This document shows, in pieces, positions 4,486 through 57,767 of a stretch of DNA of 64,000 nt; position 1 is the stretch's first letter; the number at the start of each line of letters is the position of its first letter. The translations under genes were made by a program, and so were the position numbers. The DNA lies in NCBI GenBank assembly GCA_965202585.1, contig OZ241826.1, forward strand, positions 18,786,001 to 18,850,000. The letters are read 5' to 3'. The notes under the pieces are model-generated. The model was not told where the DNA came from. It did not search any database and was given only the letters and a program-made list of their open reading frames with translations. Origin of the DNA: Thalia democratica (lineage: Eukaryota).

Positions 4486-5457
4486 TTATACTTTGTAATA
4501 TTTGACACAAGATGGGAAAACAGAACTTTTAGTAATTTTAGTAATATTACAACAAATTTTTGACCATTTTTCTTGACCTACATCATACACATAAATAGTT
4601 GATTCTTTTAAATTATCATAAAAATGATAAAAAACAACTATATTATTTCCAATACTAAAAGCGTCAACCCGACATCTTGTTATAGCTGGAAGTTTTAAAC
4701 TAGATTTTAAGGTTGAAAACTTTCTTGAAAAATTATCAAAAAGTTCACAGTTTGTGGTACTATACCCACCAATAACAAACATTTTGTTACCCATACTAAC
4801 TGCAGAATGATCATGTCTGTTTTCAATCATATTAGGTAAATAGGTCCATTTGTTTTCACGATGATCATACGATTCTACTGATTTCAAATCTACATTGTTA
4901 TTAAAACCACCAGTAATAACAATTTTACCTTGAAAAACTGTACAAGCAGCATTACGTCTAGCTACATTCAAGTCTGCTACTTTATTCCTGTTAAAACTAT
5001 TCATTTCATAAAAATAACACGAAGTAAGATTTGTACCACTGCTTTCAATCCATCCTCCGATTATAAACAGCCTTCTCATGAACGAACAAAGACAATAAAA
5101 AAACCGTTCCTTGAAATAGACATAGTGGTGTTTCCAAGCTTTAGTTTTTTCAGAATAAGTTTCAACAGACGTACAAGAGCTATTTAACTTTTTGTAGCGA
5201 TTTATGTAATCAAGAAAAGCATATATTTTAGAACTTGTAATTGATACTTTCAAAAAATTATGTTGTTTCACCGTTGAAGGAAACTCATTTACTTCAAAAC
5301 TAGGTATTTCAATTTCTTCTATTTGATTCACAACTTTACCATTTCTGTCTCTTCCTCCAAAAACCAGAATACTGAAACCTTCTTGGTTACAGTATCTATT
5401 TTCATACAAAACATTTGGTACAAAAGGAGAAGGTAAAAATTTACTGTTTGATATCAT
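4486..5457 (-). CDS. Kelch-repeat beta-propeller protein, BTB-less, subfamily A copy 1 (323 aa)
   Basis: Single ORF with Kelch motifs (ILVFGG, LFIIGG, ARRNAACTVFQGKIVITGG, SVESYDHRENKW, MFVIGG) giving about six blades; the N-terminus is only the LYENRYC segment, with no BTB/BACK. Confidence 0.92.
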   Translation of the reverse strand: MISNSKFLPSPFVPNVLYENRYCNQEGFSILVFGGRDRNGKVVNQIEEIEIPSFEVNEFPSTVKQHNFLKVSITSSKIYAFLDYINRYKKLNSSCTSVETYSEKTKAWKHHYVYFKERFFYCLCSFMRRLFIIGGWIESSGTNLTSCYFYEMNSFNRNKVADLNVARRNAACTVFQGKIVITGGFNNNVDLKSVESYDHRENKWTYLPNMIENRHDHSAVSMGNKMFVIGGYSTTNCELFDNFSRKFSTLKSSLKLPAITRCRVDAFSIGNNIVVFYHFYDNLKESTIYVYDVGQEKWSKICCNITKITKSSVFPSCVKYYKV

Positions 5458-5949
5458 AGTGAACCTAAACAGAGTAAAGTGCTAAATAGCTGTATATGTT
5501 TATTAATTTAAAATATAATTTGATAGTATAAGAAAAAAACTCTGTATATTTAGTATCATGTTAGTAATAAAGTATTCAACTTAGAAAATAACCAAATAGT
5601 AAACAAATTACTTCATTTAAATAACAATTGATATTTTGTTTTTACAAATACATTAGATATGTGATTAGATTTTTGTCTATAGTTTAATATTTTTGTTTTT
5701 AAAACTATTTAGTTTTAATTCATTACAAAAAATAAATTAAAAAAAAAAGTGTTCTGATAGTTTATTACATTTATTAAATTCTTAAAAACTAATTTTAGAT
5801 TTTCTACAGCCCTGTCAAAGGGGGCATTGAAAAAAAATGTTATGGAAAACCTTATCTAAACTTATAAACATCAACTACAATCTAAAGATACGATATCTGT
5901 AAAGTCACTGTTGTAAGCATATGTAGTTTTATTAAAAAGAAAGCTTTTT

Positions 5950-6530
5950 TCTTAATACTTTTTATTTATAAATTATCTGTTACTTATTATTACTGTACTG
6001 TCTTTTAGCAGTCTTGTGTTTTGTATTGAATTCAGAAATATCAGAAAATTCCTGTTGACATTTTGTTTAAGTTTACTTTGGATAAAAATACAAAATGGTT
6101 GTAGCTTCTAAAAAGCTAAGAAAGAAGCGTTGATAGAATAAGGAAAATTCATTTTAATTCTAACTAAATAACTTAAAAGATTGTAAAAAAAACTGATATA
6201 CTCATAAAGTACTTTGACAAAAACGAAATTATATATTTTTAAAACATAAATTTTTGATAAGATTAAAGTGTATCAATTTTTATTTCTATAAAAAATATTT
6301 AAAATGTGTATAGTTTTTTGTATAAAAATTTAGTTAAGAAGTTTAGCTTTTGTTTCAAAACTCACAAAATTAAAATTTAAGTATCGAAAAGTAATTTAGT
6401 TCAGATGCAAACATTTTTTTAAATATCATTGTAAAAAGTAATAAAATAACGGAACTTAAGTGTTAACTAATAAATGATTAATTTAGTAGTAACTTAAACT
6501 TATAATAGAATGTTAACATAAAAAGCAACA
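5950..6530. repeat. ~580-bp dispersed module; inverted copies at ~18480-19035 and ~22925-23366
   Basis: Shared blocks such as ttgtagcttctaaaaagctaa, agttcagatgcaaacatttt and tttagtagtaactt.aacttataatagaa appear as reverse complements at both other sites. Confidence 0.85.
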
Positions 6531-7453
6531 AAATAAGTAATACCTACTTTCATTTTATTTTTTTATTGTCAAACTACTTAATTAATGAATTTTACGAAGT
6601 TACACTGATGGAATTGACTTCTTTTTCTATCATAAGTAAACTTTAACACAGTAGCTTTAGCTTTTTGAAAGCAGTGTATATTTTTGTACAAAATTAATGA
6701 CTGATTAAAATTCGTTTTAACTCAAAATGAAAAACTGTAAGGCTAGTGAAAAACTGCTATACTCATGAAAGAATTTTGCATAAACGTAATTAAATTTTTA
6801 TAAACATTTAATTTAAGATAAAATTAGAGTATATATAATTTTGGTCCAAAAAGCTACTATGTTCCTAATTGTGTTGTATCATTTTTATTTAATTAATAAC
6901 AGAAAAAAAAAATTCACATCAGACAAGCTAGTTTTTAGTTTTTTCTTTTTGTCTCGTCATTAAAATACTTGGTAAATAGTAATAAAAGTATTGTAGTTTA
7001 TAATTTTAGGCTTACACTAACAACTCGAAAACCTCCGAAAATAGTGTAAACAAATTAGATTGACAAGTGTTGATGAAATTTTAAAAACATATTATGTAAT
7101 TTCTGTCGTATATAGTTAATTAATTCTAAAGCCCATTTCAAAGGTCGGCAGACTAACCATGAAAACCAAATCTAACCTGCGCCTAGTTACTAGCAAAATT
7201 TAAATGCTTTTATAATAACTCAAACGATTAATATTCTTTTAGTTGTTAGTTAACTAAAAGGATTACATAAATATTATTTATATTAAATACTAAACTGCAT
7301 GAGGTTTTTTTCGTATTGTATTCAGCATGACAGTGACCCGCGTAAAAATAGTTTTAGATGTCTGGCATAAAAAGTACTTCTAAATATTCTTGCCCGTCAC
7401 TTATACTAGGGTACAGTTATAAGCCATATAACTGTTTACTAGTTTTTTCGATA

Positions 7454-7639
7454 TCAATAAATTACAAACTCTTTCAATATGATAACACTAAGACACTTCA
7501 TTAGAGTGTAAAATGATTTGTAAATAACTGATTGTAACTTGATTACTTTTTTTACTTCTTGCCACTCATCAATATAAAGAAGAGGACTCTGTATATACTT
7601 TAACTTGTCGATTAAATTTACCGCAAACTTATTGTACAA
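7454..7639 (-). mobile_element. Possible degenerate hAT transposase fragment
   Basis: LYIDEWQEVKKVIKLQSVI loosely resembles the hAT 'L..eW..l..l..lL.p' segment; weak and short. Confidence 0.25.
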
Positions 7640-10987: not shown

Positions 10988-11069
10988 GTATAAAAATTTA
11001 GTAGATTTTTAAAGATAACAACATTTTCTCACTAAATTTCTGTTTTTATTAGTTCTTACACCTTTTCAG
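10988..11069 (+). other. Candidate 82-bp 5'-UTR intron of the type-B Kelch gene
   Basis: ag|GTATAAAAA...ctcactaaat...ccttttCAG|ctgaaatttaaATG. Equivalent GT-AG pairs of 83 bp occur at 50498-50580 (-) and 55954-56036 (-). Confidence 0.6.
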
Positions 11070-11080
11070 CTGAAATTTAA

Positions 11081-11896
11081 ATGAATTGTAGTCATTTATC
11101 TATCTTGTACCAAAATAGACATTGCTCACAAGAAGCCGATGATGTTGTGTTCAAGTTCATTTTTGATAGAAACAGCATTCAATGTAATCAATGTACCTTC
11201 TTAAATGTAAAGAAATCTACGATACTTGTACCAGAAAACAATCATAATAGTTCTAATGACCAGTTGTTCATCGATACTGATTTATTTGGATACTTGTCTT
11301 CACAAGGTAAAGTTTTAGAAAACTCTTCCCATAACTTTTCAGGCATTTGTGGATGGAGTAATATTTGTCTTTTCATGAAAGAACTATATGTGTTCAATGA
11401 TTATGGTAGGATGTGTCATAAATACAATTTCAAATTAAAAAAATGGTATGATATAGCAAGAATGAACAAAAGTAGATTTTTTGGATCTTGCACAATATTT
11501 GAAGGCAAAATTATTGTTAGTGGAGGACTTAAAATCTTCAGTGGGGTTCCTAATCCAATAAAGTCAGTAGAAGCATATGACCATCATGAAAACAAATGGA
11601 ATGTTTTATCTGATATGGTTGAAAAAAGAGTTTATCATTCTCTAGTAAGCATTGGCAACAAAATGTTTGTAACTGATATAGGACATAATAGTACCTGGGA
11701 GGTTTTTGACAGTATAACAAGAGAGTTTATCTTAATTCGATCGGAAATTGAGATTGACAAACTTGCTATTAGTAAGTATAGTGGTTGTTGTTTTGGAAAC
11801 AAAGCTGTATTATTAAATGTCTTTTCAGACAACACTTATCAGTTTATTTTCTATGATACAAAGAATGAAGAATTCAGTTCAAAGCTTTATTTATAA
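11081..11896 (+). CDS. Degenerate Kelch-repeat protein, BTB-less, subfamily B copy 1 (271 aa)
   Basis: Intact ORF with LYQNRHCSQE N-terminal motif, SCTIFEGKIIVSGG, KSVEAYDHHENKW, HSLVSIGNKMFV and WEVFD. AATAAA at ~11984 in a 3' flank shared with paralogs. Confidence 0.88.
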   Translation: MNCSHLSILYQNRHCSQEADDVVFKFIFDRNSIQCNQCTFLNVKKSTILVPENNHNSSNDQLFIDTDLFGYLSSQGKVLENSSHNFSGICGWSNICLFMKELYVFNDYGRMCHKYNFKLKKWYDIARMNKSRFFGSCTIFEGKIIVSGGLKIFSGVPNPIKSVEAYDHHENKWNVLSDMVEKRVYHSLVSIGNKMFVTDIGHNSTWEVFDSITREFILIRSEIEIDKLAISKYSGCCFGNKAVLLNVFSDNTYQFIFYDTKNEEFSSKLYL

Positions 11897-13169
11897 CTAT
11901 GACAAACTGTTGAGTGAATATTTGTTAACTGATTGTTCACTGTGTTTTTGAACTTGTTTCATTGTGCTTTGGCTATGTTTGTTAATAAATTTTTACTTCG
12001 TTCTTTGTTTTTTAAACAAAAGTAATGCATTAGAATCGAAATAAAAGACTTTTACGAAACTTAAAATGTAAAAGTAAATTAAAAACACATAAAGTAACTT
12101 TTTTATCAAAGTGATAATAAATAAAGCATACTAAAAGTATTGTATATAAAACGAATTCGTTACAAACAACGTTTTAACTTAGATCCTTAGTTGAAGTTGT
12201 ATTCTATTTGAACAAAAACTAGTTGTAAATATTTTTTTTTGGAAATAAAGTTTTTGATATAAAGATATGTTGTTGGACGCAAGTATAAAACTTAACTGTT
12301 ACGCTACACATAATAAATATATCGTAAATAAATGTTGTTAATTATAATTATATAGAAAGGTTTAAAGTTAAGTTTTAAGCTATTTTAGACATGTGTTTTT
12401 AGACACTAAGTTCTATGTGCCTTTTACGTTTATTTATGCAGATATTTCGTAAACTTAGTAGTATTGTTTTGTATAGTGTGGTCCTACGTCCCTTTAATAG
12501 GTAAACCAATATAATAAGTGCTTGGATCTATAGCATTACAATGCTATGTGACTATTTTAAAGAACAGAGAATTTGAAAAAAAAACATTTCTTTTACACAA
12601 CTACTTTAGTAAAACAGTTTTTTTGAATTCTGATCAGTCATAACTTTAGAAAAAAATGGTTATATATAACGTAGTTAGGTTTTTACAAGTTATAAATAAT
12701 GTTATAAGTAAAAAATCAGATTTTTTTAATGTTTATTAAAGTTGTACTTTGTTTTTTATTTTAAATGAAACTAAACGTTGGATTCAATCAAAATGTGTCA
12801 GAAATTAATACTATCATTCAAAAAAATCATTCTGGTTTGTTGGTTCAAAAAAAATATTTTCATGTTTCAATATAACATTTTACCTTATTGTATTTAGCAC
12901 TTTATGTTGACCATTTTTTATACTTGTACTGTTTTAATTTGAATGTAAATTGATTAATACTATTTTTTTAAGAGGCTAAATGTAAAATAACCAAATACAT
13001 TTTATTGTAATTTTTAATATAATTAAAATACAACAGTAGTAATAAATGCTAAAATGTATGTACATTTTAAGTTTTGTTATTTAACAATATCTTTTTTACT
13101 CGACGTAAGGTCGTTAAAACTTGGTTTTCATTAATGGTGCAGAAATTGCTAAAATAAAAACTTTTTATA

Positions 13170-16135: not shown

Positions 16136-16139
16136 CTCA

Positions 16140-17499: not shown

Positions 17500-20400
17500 T
17501 TTTTAAACTTCTCATTTAAGTTTTAACAAATAGTAAAGCAAGTGTAAATACCTTTTATTTACTTACAGTGCAAAGCTCGGTGTTTGTACTCATAGCTTAC
17601 ATTTAACTAATGCACTGTTAATAGAAAAAATGATTTCTTTGTCTTCGAATTTACTGGAAAATTACAAAAGCGAAGTTTCTTAGTTTTTCAAAAGTAACCT
17701 GATCCGCATCTGGCAAATTCTCAGCTTTTTGTAGAATTAGGATCTGGCCGGATCCGGATCTTTGTCTTGGTAAATCACTAAATATAGATAGAGAAGTGTT
17801 AAATGATTTTAACTTTAAGTAATTTGAATATAGTTTTATTGGCTTATCACACATTTTTTATTTAATACTCGAACTTAGAAAGACTGTTATTGGAAAACAA
17901 AAATTTAAATTTATTCAACGATAAATTAAGTCGTTTTTAAGTACACGTTTTTTATTTTGTTTTTAAACAAAAGTATATTTAATCCAGTGAAAGTAATAAA
18001 TTAAACCAGTTAAGATAAAATGTATATTAGTTTTTTTTAAATATTTGAAACTAGGTATTGACTCTGAAATAACTGTTTTAAATCCTTAATTATCAATGTT
18101 ATATTTAGTTTGTTTAGATGCTGCATATCGCGACCAGACCTATCTCCGGTATATTTTTAAACCAATCTTATTGTTACATTACTACTTTTTAATAAAGTTT
18201 GATTTCAGCTGCATTTTAGATTCAACATTTTTTAATGTAGTAAGTTAAACTTTGTTCATTAATTAGACTTATTAACAAGATCGAGTTAGTTATGAATTTT
18301 TTATTGTAGACTATGTTTGTTACAAATGTTTGTGTTATTCAAATATTATTTTGTATGTTTATAATATTTTTACTAATTATAAATAACTATTGATTAATTT
18401 TTTATTCCATTTGAGATGAGACTTTTATAGTGATTTCTAAACAATTAGTAGGCAAAATTTATAAGTACAAGTATTTTTTATTATTTTAGTTATGTTAAGG
18501 TTTCTATTATAAGTTGAAGTTACTACTAAATTAATCAGTGTTTATATAACACTTAAGCTTCATTATTTTATTACTTTTTACAATTATATTTAAAAAAAAT
18601 GTTTGCATCTGAACTAAATTGTTTTTTCGATACTTAAATTTTTAATTTTGTTATTTTTAAAAACAATAGAATTTTCTTACAAATAACTATAGACATTTTT
18701 AATTTGTTTTATAGAAATAAAAATAATTTCTCTGTAATGTTATGAAAAATTTATGTTTATAAAAGATATAATTTCGTTTGTTAAAAAACAGTTTTTTTTA
18801 CAAGCTTAAAAGTTTTTTAGCTAGAATTAAAATGAATTTGTCTGTTCTATCAACGCTTCTTGTTTAGCTTTTTAGAAGCTACAACCATTTTATATTCTTA
18901 TCCAAAGTAAACTTAAACAAAATGTCATCAGGAACTTTCTGATATTTCTGAATTTCATACAAAACAGAAGACTGACTAAAAGTCATTACAATAATATAAT
19001 TAACAGAAAATATATAAACAGTTAAGTATTAAGAAGTGATTAGTTTTTTATTATGATTAGTTTAGTTTACTTTAGTGATTTTTAAACTTTCTGTAGGCAA
19101 AAACTACTAAGAAAATATTTTTATTTTAATTTATTTATGTTATAGTTTTAATCGATTACCTGATAATAATAAGTCTTTGAATATATTAGAGCGTTTATTG
19201 TACAACAGATCATTTTCAAAATAAAAAAACATACGAAAAAGTAAAAAATCTAACAAAAAGAATCCATAGAAAATAAACAAATACATAGGAAATGTTATTA
19301 ACGTTTATATAACAAGGTTCTAAACAACTAAATTACTGTGCAAATTTATAAACAACTATCGAACGTAACATTTTACGTAAACAAAAGACTGAACAAAAAT
19401 TTGTAAGTCAATATATAAACACATTTATCATTTTCTGTTATGTAGCTTATACTTTGTAATATTTGATACAAGATGGGCAAATAGAGCTTTCAGTAATTTC
19501 AATTGTATTACAACAAATGTTTGACCATTTTTCTTGATCTACATCATACATGTAAATGATTGAATCTTTCAAATTATCATAAAAATGATAAAAAACAACC
19601 ATATTATTTCCAATACTAAAAGCGTCAAACCAACATCTTGTTATAGCCGGAAGTTTTAAACTAATTTTTAAGGTTAAAAACTTCCTTGAAAAACTATCAA
19701 ATAGTTCACAGCTTGCGGTACTATACCCACCAATAACAAACATTTTGTTACACATACTAACTGCAGAATGATCATGTCTTTTTTCAACCATATCAGGTAA
19801 AAACTTCCATTTGTTTTCATGATGATCATATGATTCTACTGATAATAAAATTCCATTGTCATTAAAACCACCCGTAATAACAATTTTACCTTGAAAAACT
19901 GTACAAGCAGCATTACGTCTAGCTACATACAAGTCTGCTACATCATTCCTGTTAAAACTATTCATTTCATAAAAATAACACGAACTTAGTTTTGTATCAC
20001 TACTTTCAATCCATCCTCCGATTATAAACAGCCTTCTCATGAACGAAGAAAAACAATAAAAAAACCGTTCCTTGAAATATACATAGTGGTGTTTCCAAGC
20101 TTTAGTTTTTTCAGAATAAGTTTCAACATACGTACAAGAGCTATTTAACTTTTTGTAGCGGTTTACACAATCAAGAAAAGCGTTTATTTTAGAATTTATA
20201 GTTACTACTTTCAAAAAATCATGTTGTTTCACCATTGAAGGAAACTCATAAACTTCAAAACTAGGTATTTTTATTTCTGTTACTTCATTCACAACTATAC
20301 CATTTATGTCTCTTCCTTCAAAAACTAAAATACTGAAGCCTTCTTGGTTACAATATCTATTTTCATACAAAACATTTGGTACAAAATGAGAAGTTAAAAA

Positions 20401-20750
20401 CTTGCTCTTTGATGTCATAGTGAACCTAGATAGAGTCTTGTGCTAAATAGTTGTAATTTTTTATTATTTTAAAACATAATTAAATAGCATACCAAAAAAA
20501 AAACTATGTATGTTTAGTATCATGTTAGTAATTAAGTATTCAACTTAGGAAATCACTAAATAGTAAACGAACTACTACATTAATATAACAATTTAAATTT
20601 TGTTTTTTCAAGTACATTAATTATCTGTATGGATTTTTGTACATATTTTAATGTTTGGTTTTTTAAAACCGGTAGTTATAGTTCATTACAAAAATAAACT
20701 CAAAAAAAAAAATCTTATTAGTGCTTTGATATTTTTTACACTTTGTATAT
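17500..20750. repeat. Type-A duplication unit (inverted copy ~25100-27780; direct partial copy ~3600-5760)
   Basis: Flanks are shared as well as the CDS, e.g. gcaaagctcggtgtttgtactca (17571) versus tgagtacaaacaccgagctttgc (27698), and the ggccggatcc motifs at ~17746 and ~27488. Confidence 0.9.
19447..20418 (-). CDS. Kelch-repeat protein, BTB-less, subfamily A copy 2 (323 aa)
   Basis: Intact ORF collinear with copy 1; 60 of 323 residues differ by manual count (~81% identity). Confidence 0.92.
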   Translation of the reverse strand: MTSKSKFLTSHFVPNVLYENRYCNQEGFSILVFEGRDINGIVVNEVTEIKIPSFEVYEFPSMVKQHDFLKVVTINSKINAFLDCVNRYKKLNSSCTYVETYSEKTKAWKHHYVYFKERFFYCFSSFMRRLFIIGGWIESSDTKLSSCYFYEMNSFNRNDVADLYVARRNAACTVFQGKIVITGGFNDNGILLSVESYDHHENKWKFLPDMVEKRHDHSAVSMCNKMFVIGGYSTASCELFDSFSRKFLTLKISLKLPAITRCWFDAFSIGNNMVVFYHFYDNLKDSIIYMYDVDQEKWSNICCNTIEITESSICPSCIKYYKV

Positions 20751-23366
20751 ACTTTAGTTTACTCTTAAGTTTTTCAAAGCCCTGATTACAGCTTATTGAA
20801 ACAATTTACAGTCGTAACTACTTTTTAAGCATTTACGACCTTTCTAAGCAAAAACTTCTTTAAGATGTCCTTAAATTTACTGAAATTTTTTGTTTTTAAA
20901 TTTCAAAACACTATTAATTTCTCGCAAACTTTTACAACGTTTTTAAAAGTTTATTTAATACATCTGTTATCTGTTATGGAGTGTTATCCTGTAATAAAAA
21001 TTGTGCAACTTTTTATATACTAATTATAAATGTTGTTTCAAAATATAGACCCCTTCATGTTTTGGTATTAAGCTAATAAAAATATGTTTCTAGTTATTTA
21101 TAAATATTTAAAAAATTTAACAAAATTTTTCCTTGTCTAATAATTTTTTCTTGAAAAATAAAACTACTTTTAAAATAATAAGCTCCTATGCTTACTTTGC
21201 TTATTTTATAAATTCTCAATTGGCAGAAATATAAAAGATAATCGACCCCTTATATGATATTTTTATTTTTACTAATTGATTAAACAGTTATTTCTTCATC
21301 TTCTAATTATTTATTGCCTTATAATAGCCAAATAATTCCTAAGAACGATATCACCTATTTTGTCAAATATTTTTAAATATATGTATAAATAAAAACTTTA
21401 TATGCTAGTAAAGCTCGATTTTATTAAAATACTAAACATCTGAAAAATTAATAAATCAAATAATTTAACCTATCACCGCTAACTTAAGATTACACCACCT
21501 AATGTGTATTTTATCATTTTATGTAAATTAATTAAATAATCATGTTAAAAAAAAAAATATTGTTTTAGATTGTTTAGTTTATAGCTATCAATATTGAAAT
21601 TTTAAATTATTAATCGTATTTTTAAAGAGATCATAGCAAAGCAAATTTACAGGAACAAATAATATCAAATTTTTACATTTAGTTTATTAAGTTAACATAT
21701 GCTTCTGTGCGTTAACACGTTAACATACTTCTACAAGGGTATGTAGGTAGATACTTAAGAATAAAGACAATTGTTTTTAGAAACATTGAGAAAAAATTAT
21801 CAATAGTAACCTATAAGTCATATTTACCAATATATTTCAACGTATCTGTTATATGTGAAACTTTAAAAGACTCTATGAACAAGTGGCAATAAAATTAATT
21901 AAAATAATGTTGGGTTAACCACATAAATTTCACCGTTAATGTTGTATTTTTTCCAATCCAGTTTGCTCGATTTTGATGTACTTGTATTGTGTGGTATCAT
22001 AATATTAAGAAATAACGCATGTAACATTTTGTACAGTTTATAAAACTAAATTAAAGTATTCTTTCATTTTGATTAAAATTTGAAAAATTTGACACTTTTC
22101 TGCACCGTTAATCTTAGTAGAAGAAAGTCTAAGATAACAAAAAAAATGTTATCAATAAAGAATACCGAGTAAAATACGTACTTATAATATTTGTTACATA
22201 TTACATATTAATGAAAACTACAAAATGGTTATATTCAATCAAATTATCCCAACCTTACATCTCTTAAAATAGCTATTTGTTTACTTGTTTCACATTTTAA
22301 TTATAACAATACAGGTTTATATTAAGACCCTAGCTAATAAAACTCAAGCAAGTATGCATGTTTTGTTATTCATATTAAAGATAGTCTGTCTGTTAATAAA
22401 ATATAAAACATATTACTTATGTATTTTTACTTTTAATAAACTGTTTTATAAGTTTACTTTAGACATAAAATAAGAGATTATAGAATAGAAAACTTGCAAG
22501 TTGTAACATAAAATATTATTAAGCTTAATGGTTTAAAAGTTATTGTATAAGAGGTTACGAAACAAATTAATTTTGTTGCGTTTTGTGGAATTTACTTTGT
22601 AGAAAGATCGTTGATTTCGTTAATATTTTCTTTTAAAAATAACTTTGTATATCAAATGACTTTAAAAAACACATTTTAGTTTCACAGATAATTTAGTTAC
22701 GATTGTACTTTGTTATCTACAAAAAATACTTAATTACTTTTTGTTTAGTTTATAAATTAATTTTTTAGTTGTTTGTCTCTTTTAAACTAAATCCAATTAA
22801 ACAAAAACATAAAAACAGTATTTATAATTATGTTGTTTGTAAAATGTTATTAAACATAACATTAAGTCCAAAAAAGAAAATAAGTAGCTCACTTTGAATG
22901 TAATTTATTACAAAATAACTAATACTTATTTTGTTGTTTTTTATGTTAGCTTTCTATTATAAGTTTGAGTTACTACTAAAATAATAAGCTTTTGTATAAC
23001 ACTTAAGTTCCATTATTTTATTACTTTTTACAATTATATATGAAAAAAATGTTTGCATCTGAACTAAATTATTTTTTGGATACTTAGATTTTAATTTTGT
23101 GAGTTTAGAAACAAAAACTAAATTTCTTAACTTTATTTTCATACCAAAAACTTTACACATTTTTATTTTTTTAATAGAAATCAAAGTAAATACACTCTAA
23201 TATTATAAAAAATACATGTTTATAAAAGATATAAAATCGTTTGTGTCAAAGTACTTTATGAGTATATCTATTCTTCTTTTAAATCTTTATATTTTTTTTA
23301 GCTAGCATTAAAATGAAATTTCCTTGTTCTCTTAACGATTCTTTCTTAGCTTTTTAGAAGCTACAA

Positions 23367-23860
23367 ATATGCTTTCAAATACTGCTTTTATGTTCTTGGC
23401 AAATTTCTCTGACTTCTTTTTAACATATGGTCTTGTAATGTATTGTTTCTTATCAACTTTATTTTCAATTAATTCTGTCTCAAAAGTGTCTTTCTTTTGT
23501 ATTTGTTCATCGATAAACTTTGCCGGAAATGAGTTTTTCATCAACAGCTCTTTTACCTTTTGCCACTCGTCATTTTGTAGATCTTCTGTAACGAGATTTT
23601 TGATTCTGTGATTCAGGTTTTTTACTAAATTTACCTTCCACGACTGCGGTACACACGAGTTAAAATTCATGAGCACGCCCGTGCTTGTTGGTTTTCTGAA
23701 TATTGATATTATAAACTTGTTGTTTTTTATTGTCACCTGTGTATCGAGATATGGTAGTTTACCTTCTTGGCAAGTTTGGATTACAAATTTCATGTCTTGA
23801 TGCATATTGTTGAGTTTTTTATCAAACTGATCTATTTGTTCTTTATTTTGGAAAATGCAT
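23367..23860 (-). mobile_element. Penelope-like retroelement reverse transcriptase C-terminal fragment
   Basis: Within ORF 23332-23937: KLPYLDTQV...IFRKPTSTGVLMNFNSCVPQSWK...LMKNSFPAKFI matches the PLE RT thumb pattern (LPFLD, RKPT, S.HP..K, NGYP..FI). The catalytic YVDD is missing just upstream. Confidence 0.85.
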
Positions 23861-24147
23861 TTTAAAATTTTATGGTCTAGAACATTGAATTCAAACTGTA
23901 TTCCAATGGCGTACAAATCGATAACCAAAAAGTACACCAGATTATAGGACCAAATAGTTACAGCGCTTTTATTTATCGTTCATTAAACAGTTTTGTTTAT
24001 TTCTTTTCACATTAAAACCTAAACTTCAGAAACAAATATCACAACAAAAACTAAATGACCAAAAATTATTCATAAACAAACACATAACCTAGTAAAAAAT
24101 CAATTAACATAGAACTACATTAATTTAACAAAATCATAAATAAGTCA

Positions 24148-24450
24148 TTAACTTAATGTTTCATTCTTTGTATCATACACAACAAACTGATGAGTGTTGT
24201 CAAAGCTAACATTTAATAAAACAATAATTTGATAATTATCACCAACACAACAAGCATACTAACTATTAATTTACTAACTTTAAATTTTTTATGATCAATT
24301 TCGCATCTAATAAGAATAAACTTTCTGGTTATACAATCGAAAACCTCCAAGTGCTACTACATTGTACCTCGAAATTTCCTCCAATTACAAGAAAATTGGT
24401 ACTCACTAACTAAGAATGTTCATGTCTTCTTTAAAACATTTTAGTTCACG
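24148..24450 (-). pseudogene. Type-B Kelch pseudogene, 3' fragment
   Basis: RRHEHS*..FLVIGG...EVFDCITRKFILIRCEI...VLLNVSFDNTHQFVVYDTKNETLS*, with stops and frameshifts; 3' flank resembles that of 11896. Confidence 0.85.
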
Positions 24451-25475
24451 TGTTTTCATAAAAACAAAACATAACAAAAAGTATATCTTATACAAACCAT
24501 TTATTGCTATCTTAATGTAAAAGTAAACAAATATACATTTTGTATTATGCAAAGGAAATTTCAATTAATTTATTTATATGACCACATTTTCGATATCTTA
24601 CGTTACAAATAAACAAATGTTATATATTTTTTCAAATTTTTAATTGAGTATTTTTTATATATTAAATATGATAAATTGAATTAGAACTGCTTATTTTTAA
24701 TTTTCTGCTTTTTTCTTTTCTAAAGTGTAATAAAGTTTTATGATAATTTGGTATGTTTGATATTTATAATTTATTTATGAAATTAATGGACTCAGCTCTT
24801 AAAGGGTTTTAATAAACCAAAATCATAATTTCTTACTAACTGTTTTACTAAATAGTCTTACTTGTTTATGTTTCTACAGCTTTACTATTGACATAAAACA
24901 GACTTTTTTAATTGAAGTTTTGTATCACATTACAAACTAATGAATGCTTAAAACAACTGTTTAATAGTTACAATTAGTTTTGAGATAAAACAAAAGAAGT
25001 GCCTAACTAATTTTATCGCTTAAATTCATTAATAAAACAATATTATTTTCATATAAAGTTTTTTCTCAATACCCCCTTTGACTAAATTAGAAAAACTCTG
25101 GTTTCTTACGATAAGTTTTCTCCAAAGCAAAAGAAAATCTAAAACTAATTTAAAGAAATTACTAAATGTCACGAAAATATTTAGAACGAAGATAATTTTT
25201 TTTGAGTAAATTTTTTATAATAAACTAAAACTACCTAGCTTTAAAAACGAAAATGTTAATCTAGGTACAAAAATTAAACCTGATATTTAATGTATTTGTA
25301 AAAACAAAATATTAATTTTTATTTAAATGTAGTAATTTGTTTACTATTTAGTGATTTTCTAAGTTGAATACTATATTACTAACATGATACTAAATATACA
25401 GAGTTTTTTCTCATGCTATTAAATTATATTTAAAATTAATAAAAGTTTACAGCTATTTATCACTCTACTATATCT

Positions 25476-26456
25476 ATGTTAACCATGACATCAAAAAGCA
25501 AGTTTTTCACTTCTCCTTTTGTACCAAATGTTTTGTATGAAAATAGATATTGTAACCAAGATGGCTTCAGTATTCTTCCTTTTGGAGGAAGAGTCAGAAA
25601 CGGTAAAGTTGTGAATCAAGTAGCAGAAATTGAAATACTTAGTTTTGAAGTAAATGAGTTTCTTTCAATGGTGAAACAACATGATTTTTTGAAAGTATTA
25701 ACTATAAGTTCTAAAATATATGCTTTTCTTGATTGCGTTAATCGCTACAAAAAGTTAAATTGCTCTTGTACGTCTGTTGAAACTTATTCTGAAAATACTA
25801 AAGCTTGGAAAAACCACTATGTATATTTCAAGAAATGGTTTTTTTATTGTCTTTGTTCGTTCATGATAAGGCTGTTTATAATCGGAGGATGGGTTGAAAG
25901 CAGTGATACAAATCTTACTTCGTGTTATATTTGTGATATCAATAGTTTTAAGAGTAATAAAGTAGCAGACTTGAATGTAGCTAGACGTAATGCTGCTTGT
26001 ACAGTTTTTCAAGGTAAGATTGTTATTACAGGTGGTTTTAATGACAATGGAATTTTATTATCAGTAGAATCTTATGATCATCATGAAAATAAATGGAAGT
26101 TTTTACCTAATATGATTGAAAAACGACGTAATCATTCTGCAGTTAGTATGTGTAACAAAATGTTTGTTATTGGTGGGTATAGTACCACAAGCTGTGAACT
26201 ATTTGATAGTTTTTCAAGAAAGATTGCATCAACATCTAGTTTAAAACTTCCAGCTATAAGAAGATGTTGGGTCGACGCTTTTAGTATCGGAAATAATATT
26301 GTTGCATTTTATCATTTTCATAATTTGAAAGATACAATTATTTACATGTACAACGTAGATCAAGAAAAATGGTCAAAAGTTTGTTGTAATATTACTAAAA
26401 TTACTACAAGCTCTATTTGGCCATCTTGTGTCAATAAGCTTCATTATAAAAAATGA
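25476..26456 (+). CDS. Kelch-repeat protein, BTB-less, subfamily A copy 3 (326 aa; orthologous start likely 25485)
   Basis: Intact ORF collinear with copies 1 and 2, with a small indel near RKIASTSS and an altered C-terminus. Confidence 0.9.
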   Translation: MLTMTSKSKFFTSPFVPNVLYENRYCNQDGFSILPFGGRVRNGKVVNQVAEIEILSFEVNEFLSMVKQHDFLKVLTISSKIYAFLDCVNRYKKLNCSCTSVETYSENTKAWKNHYVYFKKWFFYCLCSFMIRLFIIGGWVESSDTNLTSCYICDINSFKSNKVADLNVARRNAACTVFQGKIVITGGFNDNGILLSVESYDHHENKWKFLPNMIEKRRNHSAVSMCNKMFVIGGYSTTSCELFDSFSRKIASTSSLKLPAIRRCWVDAFSIGNNIVAFYHFHNLKDTIIYMYNVDQEKWSKVCCNITKITTSSIWPSCVNKLHYKK

Positions 26457-33061: not shown

Positions 33062-33895
33062 TTACGTGAAATTGAAATACTTAAAGTAAGTCTTTGAACT
33101 AAAAGTATCTTTTTTAACGTCATACACAATAAACTGATGATCACTGTTTTCAGAAACGTTTAATTGCACAACTTTACCACCAACACAACAAGCACTAGAT
33201 TTTTCTGATCGCAAATAAAATAATTCAGTTCCACGTTTTATTTGAGTAAATTTCCTTGATTTGTTATCGAAAACCTCCCAGCTTTTACTATAATACAATA
33301 AATCAGTTACAAACATTTTGTTACCAATACTGACTGAAGAATGACGTAATCTTCCTTGAATCATATCAGGTAAAATAGTCCATTTGTTTTCATGATGATC
33401 ATATGCTTCTACAGTTTTTAAAGCACTTAAACAATTAGTTCCTCCAGTAACAACAATTTTACCTTCAAAAACAGTTAAGGCGGAAAAGTATCTTTTTTCA
33501 TTCATACTTGACAATTGAAGCCATTTGTTTTGCACAGAACAATAACTAAACCAATTGTTAGACCTATCCAACACATACAATTTCTTCATAAAAATACAAA
33601 TGTTACTCCAGTAAACTTTGACTGGAAAGGATGATGTAACTTTGTAAGTATTTTTTAGAGTTAAGCTTTTTGACGAAAAGTAATCATTAAAATTAGCTTT
33701 GCGAAAAAAGTTGTCGTTTGAGCCAAGTTTAGTACTACATGTTGTATTCAAAGCACAACTTTTAACTTTGATAAAACTTGCTTTCAGAAAATTAGCCATA
33801 TCTTCATCGTATTCAAATTTAAACAAAATTTCATCATCATCCTCTTGATAGCAATGTCTCTCTTGGTACAAAATAGAATACTGACCGAACTTCAT
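33062..33895 (-). CDS. Degenerate Kelch-repeat protein, BTB-less, subfamily B copy 2 (277 aa)
   Basis: Intact ORF with ILYQERHCYQE, ALTVFEGKIVVTGG, KTVEAYDHHENKW, HSSVSIGNKMFV and WEVFD; acceptor-like tctcag| 13 nt before the ATG. Confidence 0.88.
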   Translation of the reverse strand: MKFGQYSILYQERHCYQEDDDEILFKFEYDEDMANFLKASFIKVKSCALNTTCSTKLGSNDNFFRKANFNDYFSSKSLTLKNTYKVTSSFPVKVYWSNICIFMKKLYVLDRSNNWFSYCSVQNKWLQLSSMNEKRYFSALTVFEGKIVVTGGTNCLSALKTVEAYDHHENKWTILPDMIQGRLRHSSVSIGNKMFVTDLLYYSKSWEVFDNKSRKFTQIKRGTELFYLRSEKSSACCVGGKVVQLNVSENSDHQFIVYDVKKDTFSSKTYFKYFNFT

Positions 33896-35109
33896 TTTAA
33901 AGATATTGCTGAGACTTGTAAATTATGTTTATTTAATTTTTGTTATTGAGTTAAATACGTAACATAGTAGTAAAAGGTAAATTTAAGACAAGATTAATTA
34001 TTAATTTTTAACTTAAACTTAAATAGTTGCAATATAAAGCAAACTCTGAATCGAATGTTTTTTTCTGTTTGTCTAGTAAACACATTTTATAAACAAAAAA
34101 ACTATTTAAGTATGTATTTAAAGTTTAGTAAATTTAGTAAGTATTCAATTAACAACAATTTAATTAGAACAAAATTTAAAAAATTATTTTTTTCCTTGTA
34201 ACAAATTAACATAAAAATTTATTAAAAGTGTTTATGTAAGTATTTTGGTTTTAAAACTGTATAATTGTGTGTATTTTGCATTTTAAACTGTTATTGAATA
34301 TATTTTTTAAAATAATTTTTCTAGAAAGATTACCTGTTACAATTAAACAAGTAAGAAAGTCACTTGTAAATGTTATTACATTAACTTTTCTATTCCTATC
34401 GAACAAGTGTTTATACTAATAAAAAAACAATTATTAACATTTTTACACTTAACGTTTAATAAAAAATTGGAGCAAAAGCAAACTTAAAAAAACAAAGTTA
34501 TAGTGTGAACAATTTCCATTGCTGCTGAGACAATTAGTTAAAATTTTAACTTGACTTTTCTTTAAAAATTTTAAAATTGTTCTAGAAAAACTAATCCACA
34601 ACTCTTTCTTTTAAATAAGAAAAAATTGTATCACATCTACTTAAACTTTTAAAATTTAAATTAAAGTAAAGGAATTATTTTTAACTGAAAATACAAGACT
34701 TTAAAATTTAAACTTTGAAATGAAGATAAAATAATTATTTAATACATGTAAAGTACTTTTATTCAAAATTTTATAGATTTCGTTTTAGTAACATACTATT
34801 TAATGTTAATTGATTACGTACATCTCATAACCAGTAACAGATTTTTTTTAATTTTATTGTTACTATTTCAAATTTAATTAGTCCAAATTTATCCAAAGTT
34901 TAATCAAAATTACCCTGTAACTAACTGATTTTAATTAATTTTTAAGCTAGAAACTAGAATACTACTACAAATACGTTGACTACTATTCTAATGACAAAAA
35001 CTGTAAGATAGATTATAAAAACATAAAATTGTAACAATAATGTTCTGTTTTTTTTCGCAACTAATTTTGTTGTCTTTTAATATATTTAAATTATCAGTAG
35101 AAAGGTGTT

Positions 35110-38700: not shown

Positions 38701-40283
38701 AATTAAATATAATTAAGTATAAGATGTTTAAATACAAAGCCATATTTAATAGCTTTTTTTATAAGGTTTTATATTTCAATTGAAATTCTAGAGATTAAAC
38801 ATTCTAAGTATTAAAATAATTACCTATTTTAGAAAATTGCATATGAAAACTAAGTATTTATCAGAACATTTCAGTAATTTAAAAGTATAACAAACACGAA
38901 CCATATTATTAATTGTATCAGTTGTGTTTGCATCGTTATTTGACCCTAGAAAGAAACTTTTATCAGCTCTGTAAAAAATAACTGAAATATTAACTTAAAT
39001 TTATTTTAAAATTACTTATAAGTAATTTATTTATTATTGATTTTACTAGAAACTTATTTACTTGTATTTTATAATTTTTTTACAAAATGTTACATTACAA
39101 AGTGTACGTTATATACAAATAAGTGTTTTTAGGGTTTAAAATGCCAAACGTGTAAATACTTCAGAAAAAGAGAAACACGTTTACATCTGTTATTTAACTT
39201 TAAAATAATTGGAGTACAGAAATAATGTTAATATATTTTATTTACTAGCAGTGTGCAAAATTATATACAAACTTTAATAATGATACCATCTAAATACTAC
39301 ATAACTCTTTAACAATGACAAAATATACTTGTATTGTTGATTGGTTTCTAGATTTTTCGTCTTTATCTTTATTAAATTTAGGTTTTTGAGCAAATTTTTT
39401 TGAACATTTCGCTTTAGAGCTTTCATTATTTTCCTTTTCTTTTACCCATTCTATACAGTTTCCGAGCTAATAAAATATCAGATAATATAACAAGACAGCG
39501 TTTCAGCTACATTAAATTATACTTTACTTAAATAGGTTTAAATAATTAGTTTTTATTTGCCTGATTAGCTGTTTTTTTTAACGAAAATAAAATATTTACT
39601 AAACTTTAGAAAAATATTGCATTAGATTTGTAATTTAATGCAAATTAGCTTTTAAATCAGTTTATATTATTGTTTTTTATCGAAATTAGATACAGCTGTG
39701 TACATAACAATAAACCTTAGTCATGAAAAAACAATAACATAAAATAAAATAGATAATCGAGATAGTTAATTTAGTTAAAAATGTAACAACTGTAAAAACA
39801 GACAACTAGTTGTGAACGAAAAGTTTGCAAGCTATTTAAAGTAATCTATAGGCTTTCCTAAAAACAACTAGAAACAATATATTTATAAAGCCACCACTTT
39901 GAAAACTGGTCGTGAAAGAGCATATAAGTGTTTCGAAGCGAAATAAAATATACACATAACTTAAGAATTTTCTAAATATATGAATTTATCTTGTAAACTT
40001 CAAACTAACTCATGTAGACAAATCTTGAGTAAAGAATTTTTTTTCAGCTTTTAGTTTAAAATATTTAAGTTGTTGTTTACAAAGATTTTATTATACTAAT
40101 CACTTTTATTAAAAGCTCCTTTTTAATCTATGCAAGTATTAATTAATCATATTAACTTAAATATGTACCAATGGTAATGTAATGCATCTAATTATATACT
40201 CACTTCTCTAAACAGTTGTACTAAATTCAAAACGAAAGTTAGTCTGATTCATTAACAATAGTTTATATTTTCTCAGCTTTAAT

Positions 40284-41097
40284 ATCAAAACTAATTGTAG
40301 TAAATTTTCTGTTTGTATCAAAATAAACATTGCTATTAAAATGATGTTGATGACATTCTGTTTAAATTCACTTCAGATATCAAAAATAATTATGGATGTA
40401 GCTTTTTAAAAATTAAGAATTGTTTGTTTTTAAAACCAGATGAAGTCCAGTTTGGTTCTCACAATGAATTATTTATCGAATGTGATTTGTCTGATTATTT
40501 GTCCTCTCATAGTGTGTCTTTGGATAGTTCCCTAAAATCTGATAGTTTTTGTTCAAAAATACTTTGGTAGAGTCATATTTGCATTTGCATGAAAGTTTTG
40601 TACGCGTTTTGTGAACATGATATCAAATATATTCAATGTTACTGTTACAAGCACAACTTCAAATTAAACATATGGTATGATATAGCTAGTATGAGCATAC
40701 GAGATGCAACTTTGCTTCTACTGTTTTTGAAGGTAAAGTGGTTGTTACTGGTGGGTTGAATCATTGCGGAACATTGAAATCAGTCGAAAATTATGATCAT
40801 CATGAACAAAAATGGATTCGTTTACCTGATATGATTGAAAAAAGACATTATCATTCTTTGACAAATATATGTAGCAAATTGTTTGTATCTGCCGGACAAA
40901 TTGGTACCACGTAGGAGGTTTTTGAAAGTATAACTAGAAAATTTCCTTTGTTTAGATATCAAACTGGGATTAAAGGAATTTACTTTTATAAGTTTAGTGC
41001 TTGTTGTGTTCGGAATAAAAGTGTATTGTTAATTGATATTTCAAACGACACCTATCAGTTTATTGTTTATGAAAAAAGAATGAAACATCTAGTTTAA
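40284..41097 (+). pseudogene. Full-length type-B Kelch pseudogene
   Basis: ttttctcag|ctttaatATC in place of ATG; stops TAA 40337, TAG 40568, TAG 40912; frameshifts near 40315 and 40700; retains TVFEGKVVVTGG and KSVENYDHHEQKW. Confidence 0.9.
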
Positions 41098-41551
41098 AAA
41101 AATCTTTTTGACCATGCTTAGTTATTGTAATTTTATGTCAAGTGAATTTTATTGGGTTATGTATTTGTTTATAAATCACTTTTCCTTGTTTAGTTTTCGT
41201 TATGCTTTGACTTTGTTTAAATAATAAAACTACACACTTTGAATATAAATATCTGATTATTCTTGGCATTTAAAAAACAAATTTTATGGAACTTTGTGTA
41301 AAATAACTTGTCATTTCTGTTTGTAATTTTGCTTTTATTTACAAAAAACAACTGTAGTTTGAAGTATTAAAACGTATGTATTTATGTGTTTGCTTTTAAA
41401 AAAAAATGTTTCTTTTGCTTTTGTAAACTAGTTTTTTTTTTATTGTGCAGATTATCGGTACAATAAAATTTGAAAAATAAATTATAAAATAGACTGAAAG
41501 CTAGAAATAGTTTAATTATATAAATAGCTTATAAAAACTATTGGTTTGTTA

Positions 41552-49745: not shown

Positions 49746-50486
49746 TCATGAATAAATCTTCACACTAAAAGTTTCATTTTTTGTATCAAACAAAATAAAC
49801 TGATGAGTGTTGTCCGATAAAATGTTTAATAACACAACTTTATTTCCAAAACAACAAACACTAGATTTCCCTACTTCAAACTTTGAAAATCAATTTCACA
49901 GTTAATTGAAGTAAACTTTCTTGTTATACTGTCAAAAACCTCCCAGGTTTTATTATATCGTCCAGCAGTTACAAACATTTTGTTACCAACGCAAACTGAA
50001 GAATGTCCACATCTTCTTTCGATCATGTCGGGTAAACAAGTCCAACTTAAACAGCCTCCAGAATACTTTCTGCCTCCACTAACAAAAATTCTACCTTTAA
50101 AAATTGTGCAAGTTCCGGATAGTCTACTTTTATTCATTTTTGCTATATCATACCATTTTTTTAGTTTGAAATCGTATTTGTGACTCAGCTCACCATATTT
50201 ATTGAAGACATTTAGTTCTTTTATAAATAGAAAAATATTAGTCCATCTAAAAATTTCTTGAAAGTTAGAGGAAGAATTTTGCATAACTACCCCTTTTGAA
50301 GATAGGCAATCACAGTAACTAGCTTTGATGAACAACTTGTCGTTAGAAACAGGCTGGATGGTTAAGTAGCATAGACTTCTTGACTTTTAAGAAACTTCTA
50401 TCAAAAGTAAATTTGAACACCAAATCATTGGTTTCTTGAGAGCAATGTCTATTTTGGTACAAGATAGATGAGTGACGAAAGTTCAT
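49746..50486 (-). pseudogene. Type-B Kelch pseudogene, closest to 11081-11896
   Basis: MNFRHSSILYQNRHCSQE start; frameshifts near 50345 and 49880; in-frame deletion removing KSVEAYDHHENK (reads GGCLS-WTCLPDM); C-terminus ..QFILFDTKNETFSVKIYS*. Confidence 0.9.
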
Positions 50487-55214: not shown

Positions 55215-55943
55215 TAAAACATTCATTCTATGTATGTCCGAACTAACATTCAACAATATAACTTTGTTTCCAAAGCAACATGCACTACATTAACTAATAG
55301 CAAAGTTTTCAATTTCAAATTAACATTTAATTAAAGTAAATTTCCTTGATATACTGTCAAAAATTTCCAAGGTATGATTATATCGTTCGGGAATTACAAC
55401 AAGTTTGTTCTCCATACTAACACAAAAATGTCAACATATTTTTATGATCATATCAGTTAAACAAGTTCATTTGTATTCATGATGGTCATATGCTTCTACT
55501 GTATTGACTGATTTCAAACCCCTACTAAAATTTGTAAAACCTCCACTATGAACAATTCTACTATCAAATAAAGTGCGAAATCCATGTAGTCTATTATTGT
55601 TTAATCTTGCTAAATAATACCAATTGTTAGACTTAAAATTATACTTACAACAATGCATACTATAATTATTGAACATGTTAACTTCTTTCATAAATAGACA
55701 AATATTACTCCGTCCACAAAAATTATACCTTTTGATGACATGTAATTGAATGACAGTATTAATGAATAACTCGTTGTTAGAACTTGTCTGAATGTTTTTA
55801 AATTTCAGTATCGCAGATTTGTTAACTTTTAAAAAGCTACATTGATGGTGCGAAGTGCTGTTTTTAGTAAAAGTGAACTTAATATCTTGTTCTTGAGAGC
55901 AAAGTCTATTTTGGTACAAAATAGATGTCTGATTACAATTCAT
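55215..55943 (-). pseudogene. Type-B Kelch pseudogene
   Basis: ORF 55467-55943 ends at YDHHEYK* where paralogs have W (TGG>TGA). The downstream relic continues (CLTDMI..SMENKLVV..LEIFDSISRKFTLIKC) with more stops and a frameshift. The end coordinate is approximate. Confidence 0.88.
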
Positions 55944-57452
55944 CTAAATTTAGCTGAAAAACTGTAATAACTAATAAAATCAAAATCTTTGCTAAAAAAT
56001 GTTGTTATATTTGAAAAAAAAAATTCGTTTTTGTACCTTTACAAAAAAAAATTCTTCTCAAAAACATATTAGTTTCAAATATAGATGAATTAAATAGTAA
56101 ACAATTTTAATTGTATAAAACTAAATCAATATAACAACTTGTTAAAGTAATTAAAAAATAAATATATAATAAAAAATAAACAAGTAAAGTGTTGTTTAGA
56201 TTTGTATGTTTTGAAACAAGTAATTTTATGCATTAATTACTTTGTATTAATAACCAAAATTACTGTTAATTGAATTTGTTTTATCAATAAATATAAACCT
56301 TAATAGTAAAACATTGAAGCTAAAAGTTTTGTACACTCAAATCAGTCAATTTGAGATTTTTGATAGATTTAAGTATTTAAATATATCTTTTTATTATACT
56401 TACTTATTGTTATAAAAGCACACTTTATAAACATTCTAAACTTATGATTATTAAAACTTTTATTTTAAAACGATAAGATTAAAAACAGAGAAAAGTTTTG
56501 TGTTAATTTTTCTTTGTTAGATTTGGTTGGTGTATTTAAAGAATATTGTGTGTCAATAATTAGTTGTAAACCAATGTTGTTAAAAGTAGACTTATATAAA
56601 AGTTAAATAATAAAAAATAATACAGTAATAATAAATAACTAAATTTGTTAAAGGACTGAATAATTCTAAAATAAACATTAAAAGAATGCATGCTAACATT
56701 ATTGTTATTACCTATAATTTTTGTATATAAATCTACTATTTTATTTTGAACGTAAAACAAGTGAATAAATCTTATTTTCGAAACAATTTTAAAAACTAGA
56801 TTGAATATTTTCGTTTTGTATTTGTTATAATAAAATAGTCTTTAATTTTTTATAAAGCATGTATTTTACTCGGTATTCTTTGTTAAAAATACTTGTGTCT
56901 TTAATATTTTTCGCATACATTTTTTTCATTATGATTAACAATGCAGAGTACTATTTAAAAGTTTTAAAAATTTGTTTAAAGTTCAAATTTTTTTGTTTTA
57001 TTTTTATCTCCTGTAAAAATTGTTACTTCACGTTATTACTTTAAAACTACAACAAAGTACAAATAAGTTAAAATCGAGCAGACTGGGATGAGAAAGAAGG
57101 TTTCACATGAACGGTGACATTAATTAGGTAGACATCAAATGTAGTTAGTTTAAATAAATCTAAAAAATTAAAATTAAGATTTAAAAAGTTCTCTCAATCA
57201 GTTTGCAATTGATTTGTAACCGTCATCAATTGCAGTTTTAATTGGTTGGATTTTGGTTAGGTTAAGCTACTCTTAAATAAGACTATTAAAAATGGTTATT
57301 GAAAGTATTACAGACGTAGGATTTATTAATAAATAAAGCTAAAGCACAACAAAAACTAATTTAGTAAAACATTGTGTAGACAAATATAAAAAAAAAAACA
57401 ATACTCACATAACTTAGAATCACTTAATAGTTTGTTAAGGTCATATTTCAAA

Positions 57453-57767
57453 TTAAATGTTTTTATTGTTTCTACCAAACACAATAAAGTGACGGGTATA
57501 AACACAAACATTGATTACCAGAACTTTATCTCCAACACAACTAGCACTAAACTTACTAGTACTAAAATATTCAGATTCAGTTTTTTAAAAAATTAAAGTA
57601 AATTTTCTTGCTCTACATCAAAAACCTTCTACGTTTTGTTAAAATGCCCAATAGTTACAAACAATTTATTATTCATACTAACTGCAAAATAGTTATACTT
57701 TCTTTCAACCAAAAGAGATAAAAACTACCACTGATGATCATACGCTTCTACTGACTTCAAATTACCT
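57453..57767 (-). pseudogene. Type-B Kelch pseudogene, 3' fragment
   Basis: GNLKSVEAYDH..W*FL..LVERKYNYFAVSMNNKLFVTIGHFNKT*KVFD...SASCVGDKVLVINV...RHFIVF. Confidence 0.82.

Follow-up and report, generated by a model that had tools for sequence, protein, structure and literature searches.

What is a group of Kelch open reading frames (ORFs) when it lies on both strands, among decayed relatives and with no BTB or BACK domain nearby? The question is raised by a stretch of 64,000 nucleotides from the pelagic tunicate Thalia democratica (assembly GCA_965202585.1, contig OZ241826.1, positions 18,786,001 to 18,850,000 of the forward strand; hereafter the window), in which we find five intact Kelch ORFs and six dead copies. 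KLHL adaptors are regarded as one-piece machines that grip Cullin-3 with BTB and BACK and the substrate with the propeller. We think it likely, from the sequence evidence set out below, that the ORFs of the window are real, separately translated stand-alone Kelch propeller genes that descended from such BTB-BACK-Kelch (KLHL) adaptors by N-terminal loss and have been kept by selection.

Each gene would consist of one intron-free coding exon, translated from its own ATG shortly before a shared LYxNRxCxQ motif, and the 3' splice site that precedes the ATG would most likely be joined to a leader without coding sequence, which may be a spliced leader or else a short 5' exon. Birth and death would shape the cluster, as copies duplicate locally at the DNA level, are inverted, and decay, and selection would preserve the propeller fold, blades IV-V, and the N-terminal motif while the loops of the substrate face drift about neutrally.

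Eleven Kelch loci in two subfamilies

The copies were counted by a tblastn search of the window with the intact ORFs and by three-frame reading of the weak copies. This census gave 11 Kelch loci between 4486 and 57769, five of them intact and six dead, on both strands. All six dead copies or fragments are of type B, the subfamily that numbers eight copies in total (6/8 dead). The window is AT-rich (23-27% G+C, zero N), and open frames of 270-326 codons are far from chance expectation at 24% G+C. Pfam Kelch_1 scores are 96.5 bits for A1, 76.6 for A2, 72.7 for A3, 55.2 for B2, and 36.3 for B1, against a gathering cut-off of 20.1. The loci, together with the sites directly upstream of them, are as follows (window positions).

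4486-5457, minus strand: A1, intact, 323 amino acids, subfamily A; Pfam Kelch_1 E=5.8e-28
5540-5604, minus strand: conserved block upstream of A1, a branch-point-like site TTACTAAC and then AG, 83-147 nucleotides before the ATG; likely 3' splice site, cis or spliced-leader
6590-6709, minus strand: dead N-terminal fragment of type B, ~41 codons, found by tblastn with B2; ATG changed to ACG, acceptor AG lost, one stop
11055-11080, plus strand: B1 acceptor and leader, polypyrimidine tract and CAG, acceptor mapped at 11069|11070, then 11 nucleotides of leader whose in-frame TAA adjoins the ATG
11081-11896, plus strand: B1, intact, 271 amino acids, subfamily B; Pfam Kelch_1 and Kelch_6; within the B clade
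19447-20418, minus strand: A2, intact, 323 amino acids, subfamily A
20504-20568, minus strand: conserved block upstream of A2, branch-point-like site and AG
~24040-24348, minus strand: C-terminal fragment of type B, frameshifted; adjoins a high-copy repeat
25339-25403, plus strand: conserved block upstream of A3, branch-point-like site and AG
25476-26456, plus strand: A3, intact, 326 amino acids, subfamily A; the ATG in common with A1 and A2 is at 25485
33062-33895, minus strand: B2, intact, 277 amino acids, subfamily B
33896-33918, minus strand: B2 acceptor and leader, TCTCAG and a 13-nucleotide leader before the ATG
40313-41115 (40149-41228 with flanks), plus strand: psi40k, dead type B copy; ATG lost, three stops, one frameshift
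49752-50486 (to 50512 with acceptor and leader), minus strand: psi50k, dead type B copy; two frameshifts, internal deletion of the SVEAYDHHENKW stretch
55242-55943 (to 55968 with acceptor and 10-nucleotide leader), minus strand: psi55k, dead type B copy; four in-frame stops, in-frame TAG before the ATG
57477-57769, minus strand: dead C-terminal fragment of type B; stops and a frameshift

In a tree with 85 relatives, subfamilies A and B form separate clades, each with a support of 100 in the Shimodaira-Hasegawa-like approximate likelihood ratio test; A1-A3 make up a tight clade, and the five longer type B copies stand with one protein from the Tara Oceans marine metagenomes on a long stem. A1 and A2 are 81.4% identical and differ at 60 of 323 residues. 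The motif reads LYENRYCNQE in A1 and A2, LYENRYCNQD in A3, LYQNRHCSQE in B1, and LYQERHCYQE in B2, and it is degraded in the dead copies. The original prediction, made from the letters of the window alone, had described five intact and at least six dead Kelch copies in both orientations and two subfamilies, 60 differences between A1 and A2, and a shared motif near the ORF starts; tblastn, three-frame reading, and the tree confirm the first of these statements, the pairwise alignment confirms the second, and the motif is indeed present in all five intact copies.

A propeller of the KLHL type that starts after BACK

An AlphaFold2 model of A1, built from an alignment of 67 sequences, has a predicted local distance difference test score (pLDDT) of 86.5 and a predicted template-modelling score of 0.86, and its 24 strands form six blades of four strands each, with the C-terminal strand closing the ring. 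A Foldseek search with this model returned the Kelch domains of KLHL12, KLHL17, KLHL3, KLHL20, and KEAP1 over ~300 columns, with template-modelling (TM) scores of 0.83-0.86, and a sequence search of the Protein Data Bank gave KLHL3, IVNS1ABP, KLHL2, KLHL12, KLHL20, and KEAP1 as the top natural matches, with E-values of 1e-19 to 1e-28 for the KLHL family. On the strength of the model, we are confident that A1 is predicted correctly as a six-blade propeller of the KLHL/KEAP1 type. The model of B2 has an overall pLDDT of 74 and a TM score of 0.62; four of its blades are confident (residues ~99-270), and its first 100 residues are poorly modelled. Similarity between the A and B subfamilies is restricted to A1 residues ~123-299. 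The Pfam model Kelch_KLHDC2_KLHL20_DRC7 also matches A1-A3 above its cut-off, and since this model covers KLHL20 as well, the match does not put A1-A3 in the KLHDC group.

The only relatives of these genes that we found lie on Tara Oceans contigs whose base composition is similar, and they are at most 54% identical. In ~70 of these relatives the motif stands at residue 11-48. Another set, of more than 285 proteins with a length of ~450-530 amino acids, combines BACK with Kelch and is 33-35% identical to the window genes over the whole propeller; none of the 120 best of them has BTB. In three such relatives, P0115, P0119, and P0120, a Pfam BACK domain is followed ~36 residues later by YYTSRYCNQ. 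In P0120 BACK ends near residue 199 and YTSRYCNQ stands at 236, and A1 residues 18-319 are collinear with residues 236-525 of this protein. Because A1 is collinear with relatives of this kind from the post-BACK motif to the C-terminus, the motif is the segment between BACK and blade I, and because LYxNRxCxQ aligns just after BACK, the window genes read as N-terminally shortened KLHL derivatives that have lost both BTB and BACK. The JGI metagenomes gave only two distant Kelch matches (26-31% identity). A viral origin was considered and rejected, as a family-pattern scan of the viral contigs of IMG/VR returned zero relatives.

No sign of the lost domains was seen in the window. The Kelch ORFs themselves have no BTB or BACK in a Pfam scan; the BACK parts of P0115, P0119, and P0120, used as tblastn queries against the window, found no BACK (best E 0.16); and the 41 same-strand open frames of at least 45 amino acids in the 5 kb that precede the intact genes, five in all, contain no BTB or BACK at E<=0.1. 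The other ORFs of at least 70 amino acids that were scanned have no BTB or BACK domain either, the scan leaving out five ORFs (those antisense within A1, within A3, and in the repeat ORF, 23369-23611, and two in a 45-bp tandem repeat). Three earlier proposals are thus borne out: that the copies are BTB-less, within the window; that the motif is the linker before blade 1, by its place just after BACK and the collinearity with P0120; and that the genes derive from KLHL-type propellers, by the Protein Data Bank and Foldseek matches.

Own start codons behind a splice acceptor

In type B genes, a polypyrimidine tract and CAG lie 10, 11, 11, 12, and 13 nucleotides before the ATG in psi55k, B1, psi50k, the type B gene of Tara contig L003, and B2, respectively. 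Reading phase is not kept across this range of spacings, and in three of the five copies (B1, psi50k, and psi55k) a stop lies in frame between the acceptor and the ATG, while B1, B2, psi55k, and the L003 gene all have exactly 8 codons from the ATG to the motif. Taken together, the variable spacing of 10-13 nucleotides, the stops in the leaders, and the fixed distance from ATG to motif are the signature of a 5' untranslated leader at the acceptor and not of a coding junction, and the in-frame stops argue against in-frame splicing to upstream BTB exons. The sequences of the type B genes and of the L003 gene have the arrangement expected of spliced-leader trans-spliced tunicate genes, a 3' splice site shortly upstream of the start codon and a putative non-coding leader.

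The start of type A genes appears less clear-cut than that of type B. Their ATG lies 15-16 codons before the motif, and a block of 65 nucleotides, which includes TTACTAAC and an AG and is common to A1-A3, lies 83-147 nucleotides before it. By a hand count on the alignment, this block has ~9% differences, compared with ~21% in the remaining upstream flank. Between the only AG common to A1-A3 and the ATG lie in-frame stops.

A 16-nucleotide spliced leader of the Ciona type has one match in the window, ATTCTATTTGAACAAA at 12201-12216 on the plus strand, ~300 nucleotides downstream of B1, with 2 mismatches; a match of this kind is at chance level (25 of 100 shuffles) and does not stand at a gene start.

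Constraint follows the fold

The ratio of nonsynonymous to synonymous substitution rates (dN/dS) was calculated by the Nei-Gojobori method for A1-A3, three close paralogues, and was split by the structural classes of the A1 model, with the faces of the propeller assigned from its strand order. Overall, dN/dS is 0.60-0.63 at a synonymous divergence (dS) of ~0.15. The ratio is 0.45 in the strands and 0.28 in the N-terminal tail, and it reaches 0.94 in the top loops of the binding face (B-C and D-A), a value based on few changes, 30 nonsynonymous and 8 synonymous ones in each pair. In KLHL proteins, the B-C and D-A loops form the substrate pocket.

The same division is seen across 67 family members, where the entropy of the top loops is 2.64 bits, compared with 1.83 bits in the bottom loops (Mann-Whitney p=4.6e-6) and 1.84 bits in the strands. 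The motif has an entropy of 0.79 bits, with V16-Q25 nearly invariant; blade IV has 1.29 bits and blade V 1.80 bits, and blades I, II, III, and VI have 2.2-2.7 bits. Type A coding sequences are 90% identical, compared with 78-85% for their flanks, and the two internal length differences in the type A protein alignment are single whole codons. If substitutions followed the spectrum seen in the flanks, a type A ORF would be broken by 6.9% of the neutral ones, so that the chance of an open frame after 46 changes is 0.037 per lineage and ~5e-5 for all three lineages. Type B ORFs are open at 43-50% protein identity to each other and to P0121, the intact type B protein of contig L003. As judged from these comparisons, the ORFs are not decaying neutrally.

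In two sets of Tara contigs (L010/L011/L012 and L007/L008/L009), Kelch coding sequences differ by 0.3-1.2%, synonymous sites included, and their flanks differ by 1-12%, all in small counts. Near-identical coding sequences in divergent flanks could reflect gene conversion limited to the coding sequence or constraint on synonymous sites.

Two ideas about selection had been put forward for this cluster. A dN/dS near 1, spread uniformly, is what neutral decay would leave, and the ratios that we find (0.45 in strands versus 0.94 in top loops), together with the entropy pattern, are not uniform. The suggestion that the genes show the pattern of immune and conflict families gains no support: with the overall ratio at ~0.6, the binding-face loops are approximately neutral (0.94) and not above neutrality, and no dN/dS above 1 was seen in any structural class of type A or in the allele clusters of the Tara relatives, all of which offer few changes.

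Weighing the alternatives

Several observations weigh against separately translated genes that are kept by selection. Both public sequencing runs that hold the region are DNA, with unique intergenic pieces present at a depth of ~35-40 and with zero differences. Overall, dN/dS differs from 1 only modestly (Fisher p=0.055, or 0.037 when strands and bottom loops are taken together), the pooled ratio of nonsynonymous to synonymous diversity in two allele clusters of Tara relatives is ~0.8 over very few sites, and the conservation of blades IV-V may in part be an artefact of the word-based homologue search. The upstream screen for BTB spans only frames of at least 45 codons within 5 kb. Furthermore, A1 and A2 have an AG 7 nucleotides before the ATG, absent in A3, which bypasses the upstream stops, and an in-frame junction may be possible at this site. 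Lastly, any biochemical role of these propellers is one that we infer.

With these points in mind, the ORFs might be taken as the last coding exons of ordinary BTB-BACK-Kelch genes, with distant upstream exons cis-spliced to them in frame. The splice-acceptor-like site before every copy, the nearby AG of A1 and A2 with no stop between it and the ATG, and the existence of BACK-bearing relatives would all fit, but the stops between acceptor and ATG in B1, psi50k, and psi55k would end such a reading frame, the spacing of 10-13 nucleotides breaks phase where the distance from ATG to motif is fixed, same-strand frames up to 5 kb upstream have no BTB or BACK and tblastn with BACK parts finds none in the window, the duplicated unit is only ~1.7 kb long, and BTB is missing from all 120 of the best BACK-Kelch relatives. 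We consider this arrangement very unlikely. In the Drosophila loci mod(mdg4) and lola, a splice acceptor precedes each of the variable C-terminal units, which occupy both strands, and the units of the window, which also lie on both strands with an acceptor each, might similarly be Kelch exons that are trans-spliced in frame to common BTB(-BACK) exons elsewhere. Each unit of the window, unlike those of mod(mdg4) and lola, has its own conserved ATG, and the in-frame stop after the acceptor in several copies (B1, psi50k, and psi55k) and the variable phase would defeat such a junction, which leaves this explanation with hardly any credit.

A different objection is that the region is prone to duplication and carries the copies along as non-functional passengers, with frames that are open through youth or through repair by gene conversion. 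That three frames would survive by chance at ~5e-5, that constraint tracks the fold (strands, motif, and blades IV-V are conserved and top loops are free), and that type B ORFs and their start codon have been kept across deep divergence and between species all speak against this, and we hold it to be improbable even though 6 of 11 copies are dead, dN/dS is 0.6 with top loops near 1, the allele-level ratio in Tara relatives is ~0.8, the public runs that hold the region are DNA only, and Tara coding sequences far more alike than their flanks could mean gene conversion. A further reading, a diversified intracellular recognition repertoire for immunity or conflict with positive selection at the binding face, would account for the concentration of variability on top-face loops across 67 members and for a large family with many dead copies; as the top-loop dN/dS is 0.94 and not above 1, a value that comes from three close paralogues, we regard this reading as doubtful. 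Stand-alone propeller genes that are shortened from KLHL adaptors and kept by selection are thus the explanation that we carry forward.

Duplication, turnover, and copy number

The duplicated unit of type A is ~1.7 kb long and reaches from ~290-350 nucleotides upstream to ~380-410 nucleotides downstream of the coding sequence. Upstream, the copies remain homologous beyond the acceptor and into the flank, and as no 5' end shows a remnant of a spliced leader, the copies arose by DNA duplication and inversion. Retroposition of trans-spliced mRNAs, which was entertained as another origin, was rejected on the same two grounds.

How fast the cluster turns over differs between the subfamilies. The type A triplet is young by its dS of ~0.15, and the type B lineages are old by their divergence. 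The dead copy psi40k is the sister of the intact Tara protein P0121 (support 98), and it is 76% identical in nucleotide sequence to contig L003 over 1088 nucleotides, flanks included; this sister relation and the alignment of the flanks indicate that the lineage already existed when the two animals diverged and has since decayed here. The turnover claimed in the original prediction is rapid only in a relative sense: the type A triplet is young, whereas the type B lineages are old and one of them has an intact counterpart in another species. A second Kelch-like piece is found on L003 at 2250-2480, ~650 nucleotides downstream of P0121 and on the same strand, which suggests that tandem arrays are also present in the relative.

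Word depth in the DNA runs, summed over the A2 coding region, reaches 19,000-21,000. Such a sum does not count copies, but it is in keeping with a very large family at other sites of the genome.

An interspersed repeat of ~400-570 bp, 82-85% identical between copies, lies at ~5950-6520 (upstream of A1), at ~18490-19035 (downstream of A2, inverted), and at ~22976-23366 (upstream of A3). It stands at differing positions and in differing orientations by the type A genes, outside the 1.7-kb unit.

Relation to known systems

KLHL adaptors such as KLHL12, KLHL3, KLHL2, KLHL20, and KEAP1 share the six-blade propeller with A1, and the B-C and D-A loops are variable in the family of the window. In contrast to these adaptors, the window genes lack BTB and BACK and so would have no known way to dimerize or to bind Cullin-3, and they are intron-free, stand in tandem arrays, and include many dead copies. 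The BTB-less BACK-Kelch ORFs of the Tara contigs have the same YxxRYCxQ motif right after BACK; they keep the BACK domain, whereas the window genes start just before the motif.

Propellers without BTB are also found in proteins of the KLHDC type (KLHDC2, KLHDC3, and KLHDC10). A C-terminal BC/Cul2 box connects KLHDC proteins to Cullin-2, while the C-terminus of A1 is, in the model, the closing strand of the propeller. Nematode MATH-BTB and plant F-box-Kelch genes form large tandem birth-and-death families with variable substrate surfaces, in which the docking domain (BTB or F-box) is kept. The window genes resemble these expansions and differ from them in having lost the ligase-docking domain. 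No published description of the family was found in the literature on kelch genes of tunicates or on intronless lineage-specific expansions.

Our findings lead us to speculate that the top face of these propellers engages binding partners, while the proteins would not bring in Cullin-3 on their own. They might then compete with ligase adaptors or buffer them, or they might serve as binding modules for which the motif and blades IV-V provide the contact with a partner. More speculatively, the invariant motif and blades IV-V might dock a common partner, for example a BTB-BACK protein or another ligase scaffold in trans, while blades I-III and VI vary for hundreds of targets; although we think such a two-part recognition system improbable, it would amount to a split, diversified repertoire of ubiquitin-ligase adaptors in a pelagic tunicate. 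A large propeller family that lacks the ligase-docking half and is nevertheless kept by selection would depart from the picture of the one-piece KLHL adaptor. It would amount to a natural set of proteins that buffer protein degradation or inhibit it competitively, or else to a new diversified intracellular binding repertoire in a chordate relative, and it would extend the short list of animal gene families with rapid birth and death outside classical immunity.

Other features of the window

Besides repeats and Kelch genes, nothing recognizable was found in the window by Pfam on the other scanned ORFs or by Rfam, which returned zero RNA families. An ORF of 201 amino acids at 23332-23937 on the minus strand is without a convincing Pfam match, and its summed word depth is ~10,000 at 23401-23800, compared with ~35-40 for unique DNA. 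The ORF probably represents a fragment of some high-copy mobile element, and its sequence is reminiscent of a retroelement polymerase. At 31007-31608 lies a 45-bp minisatellite with 13.3 copies, 81% identity, and a higher-order period of 316 bp, which gives rise to spurious ORFs on both strands.

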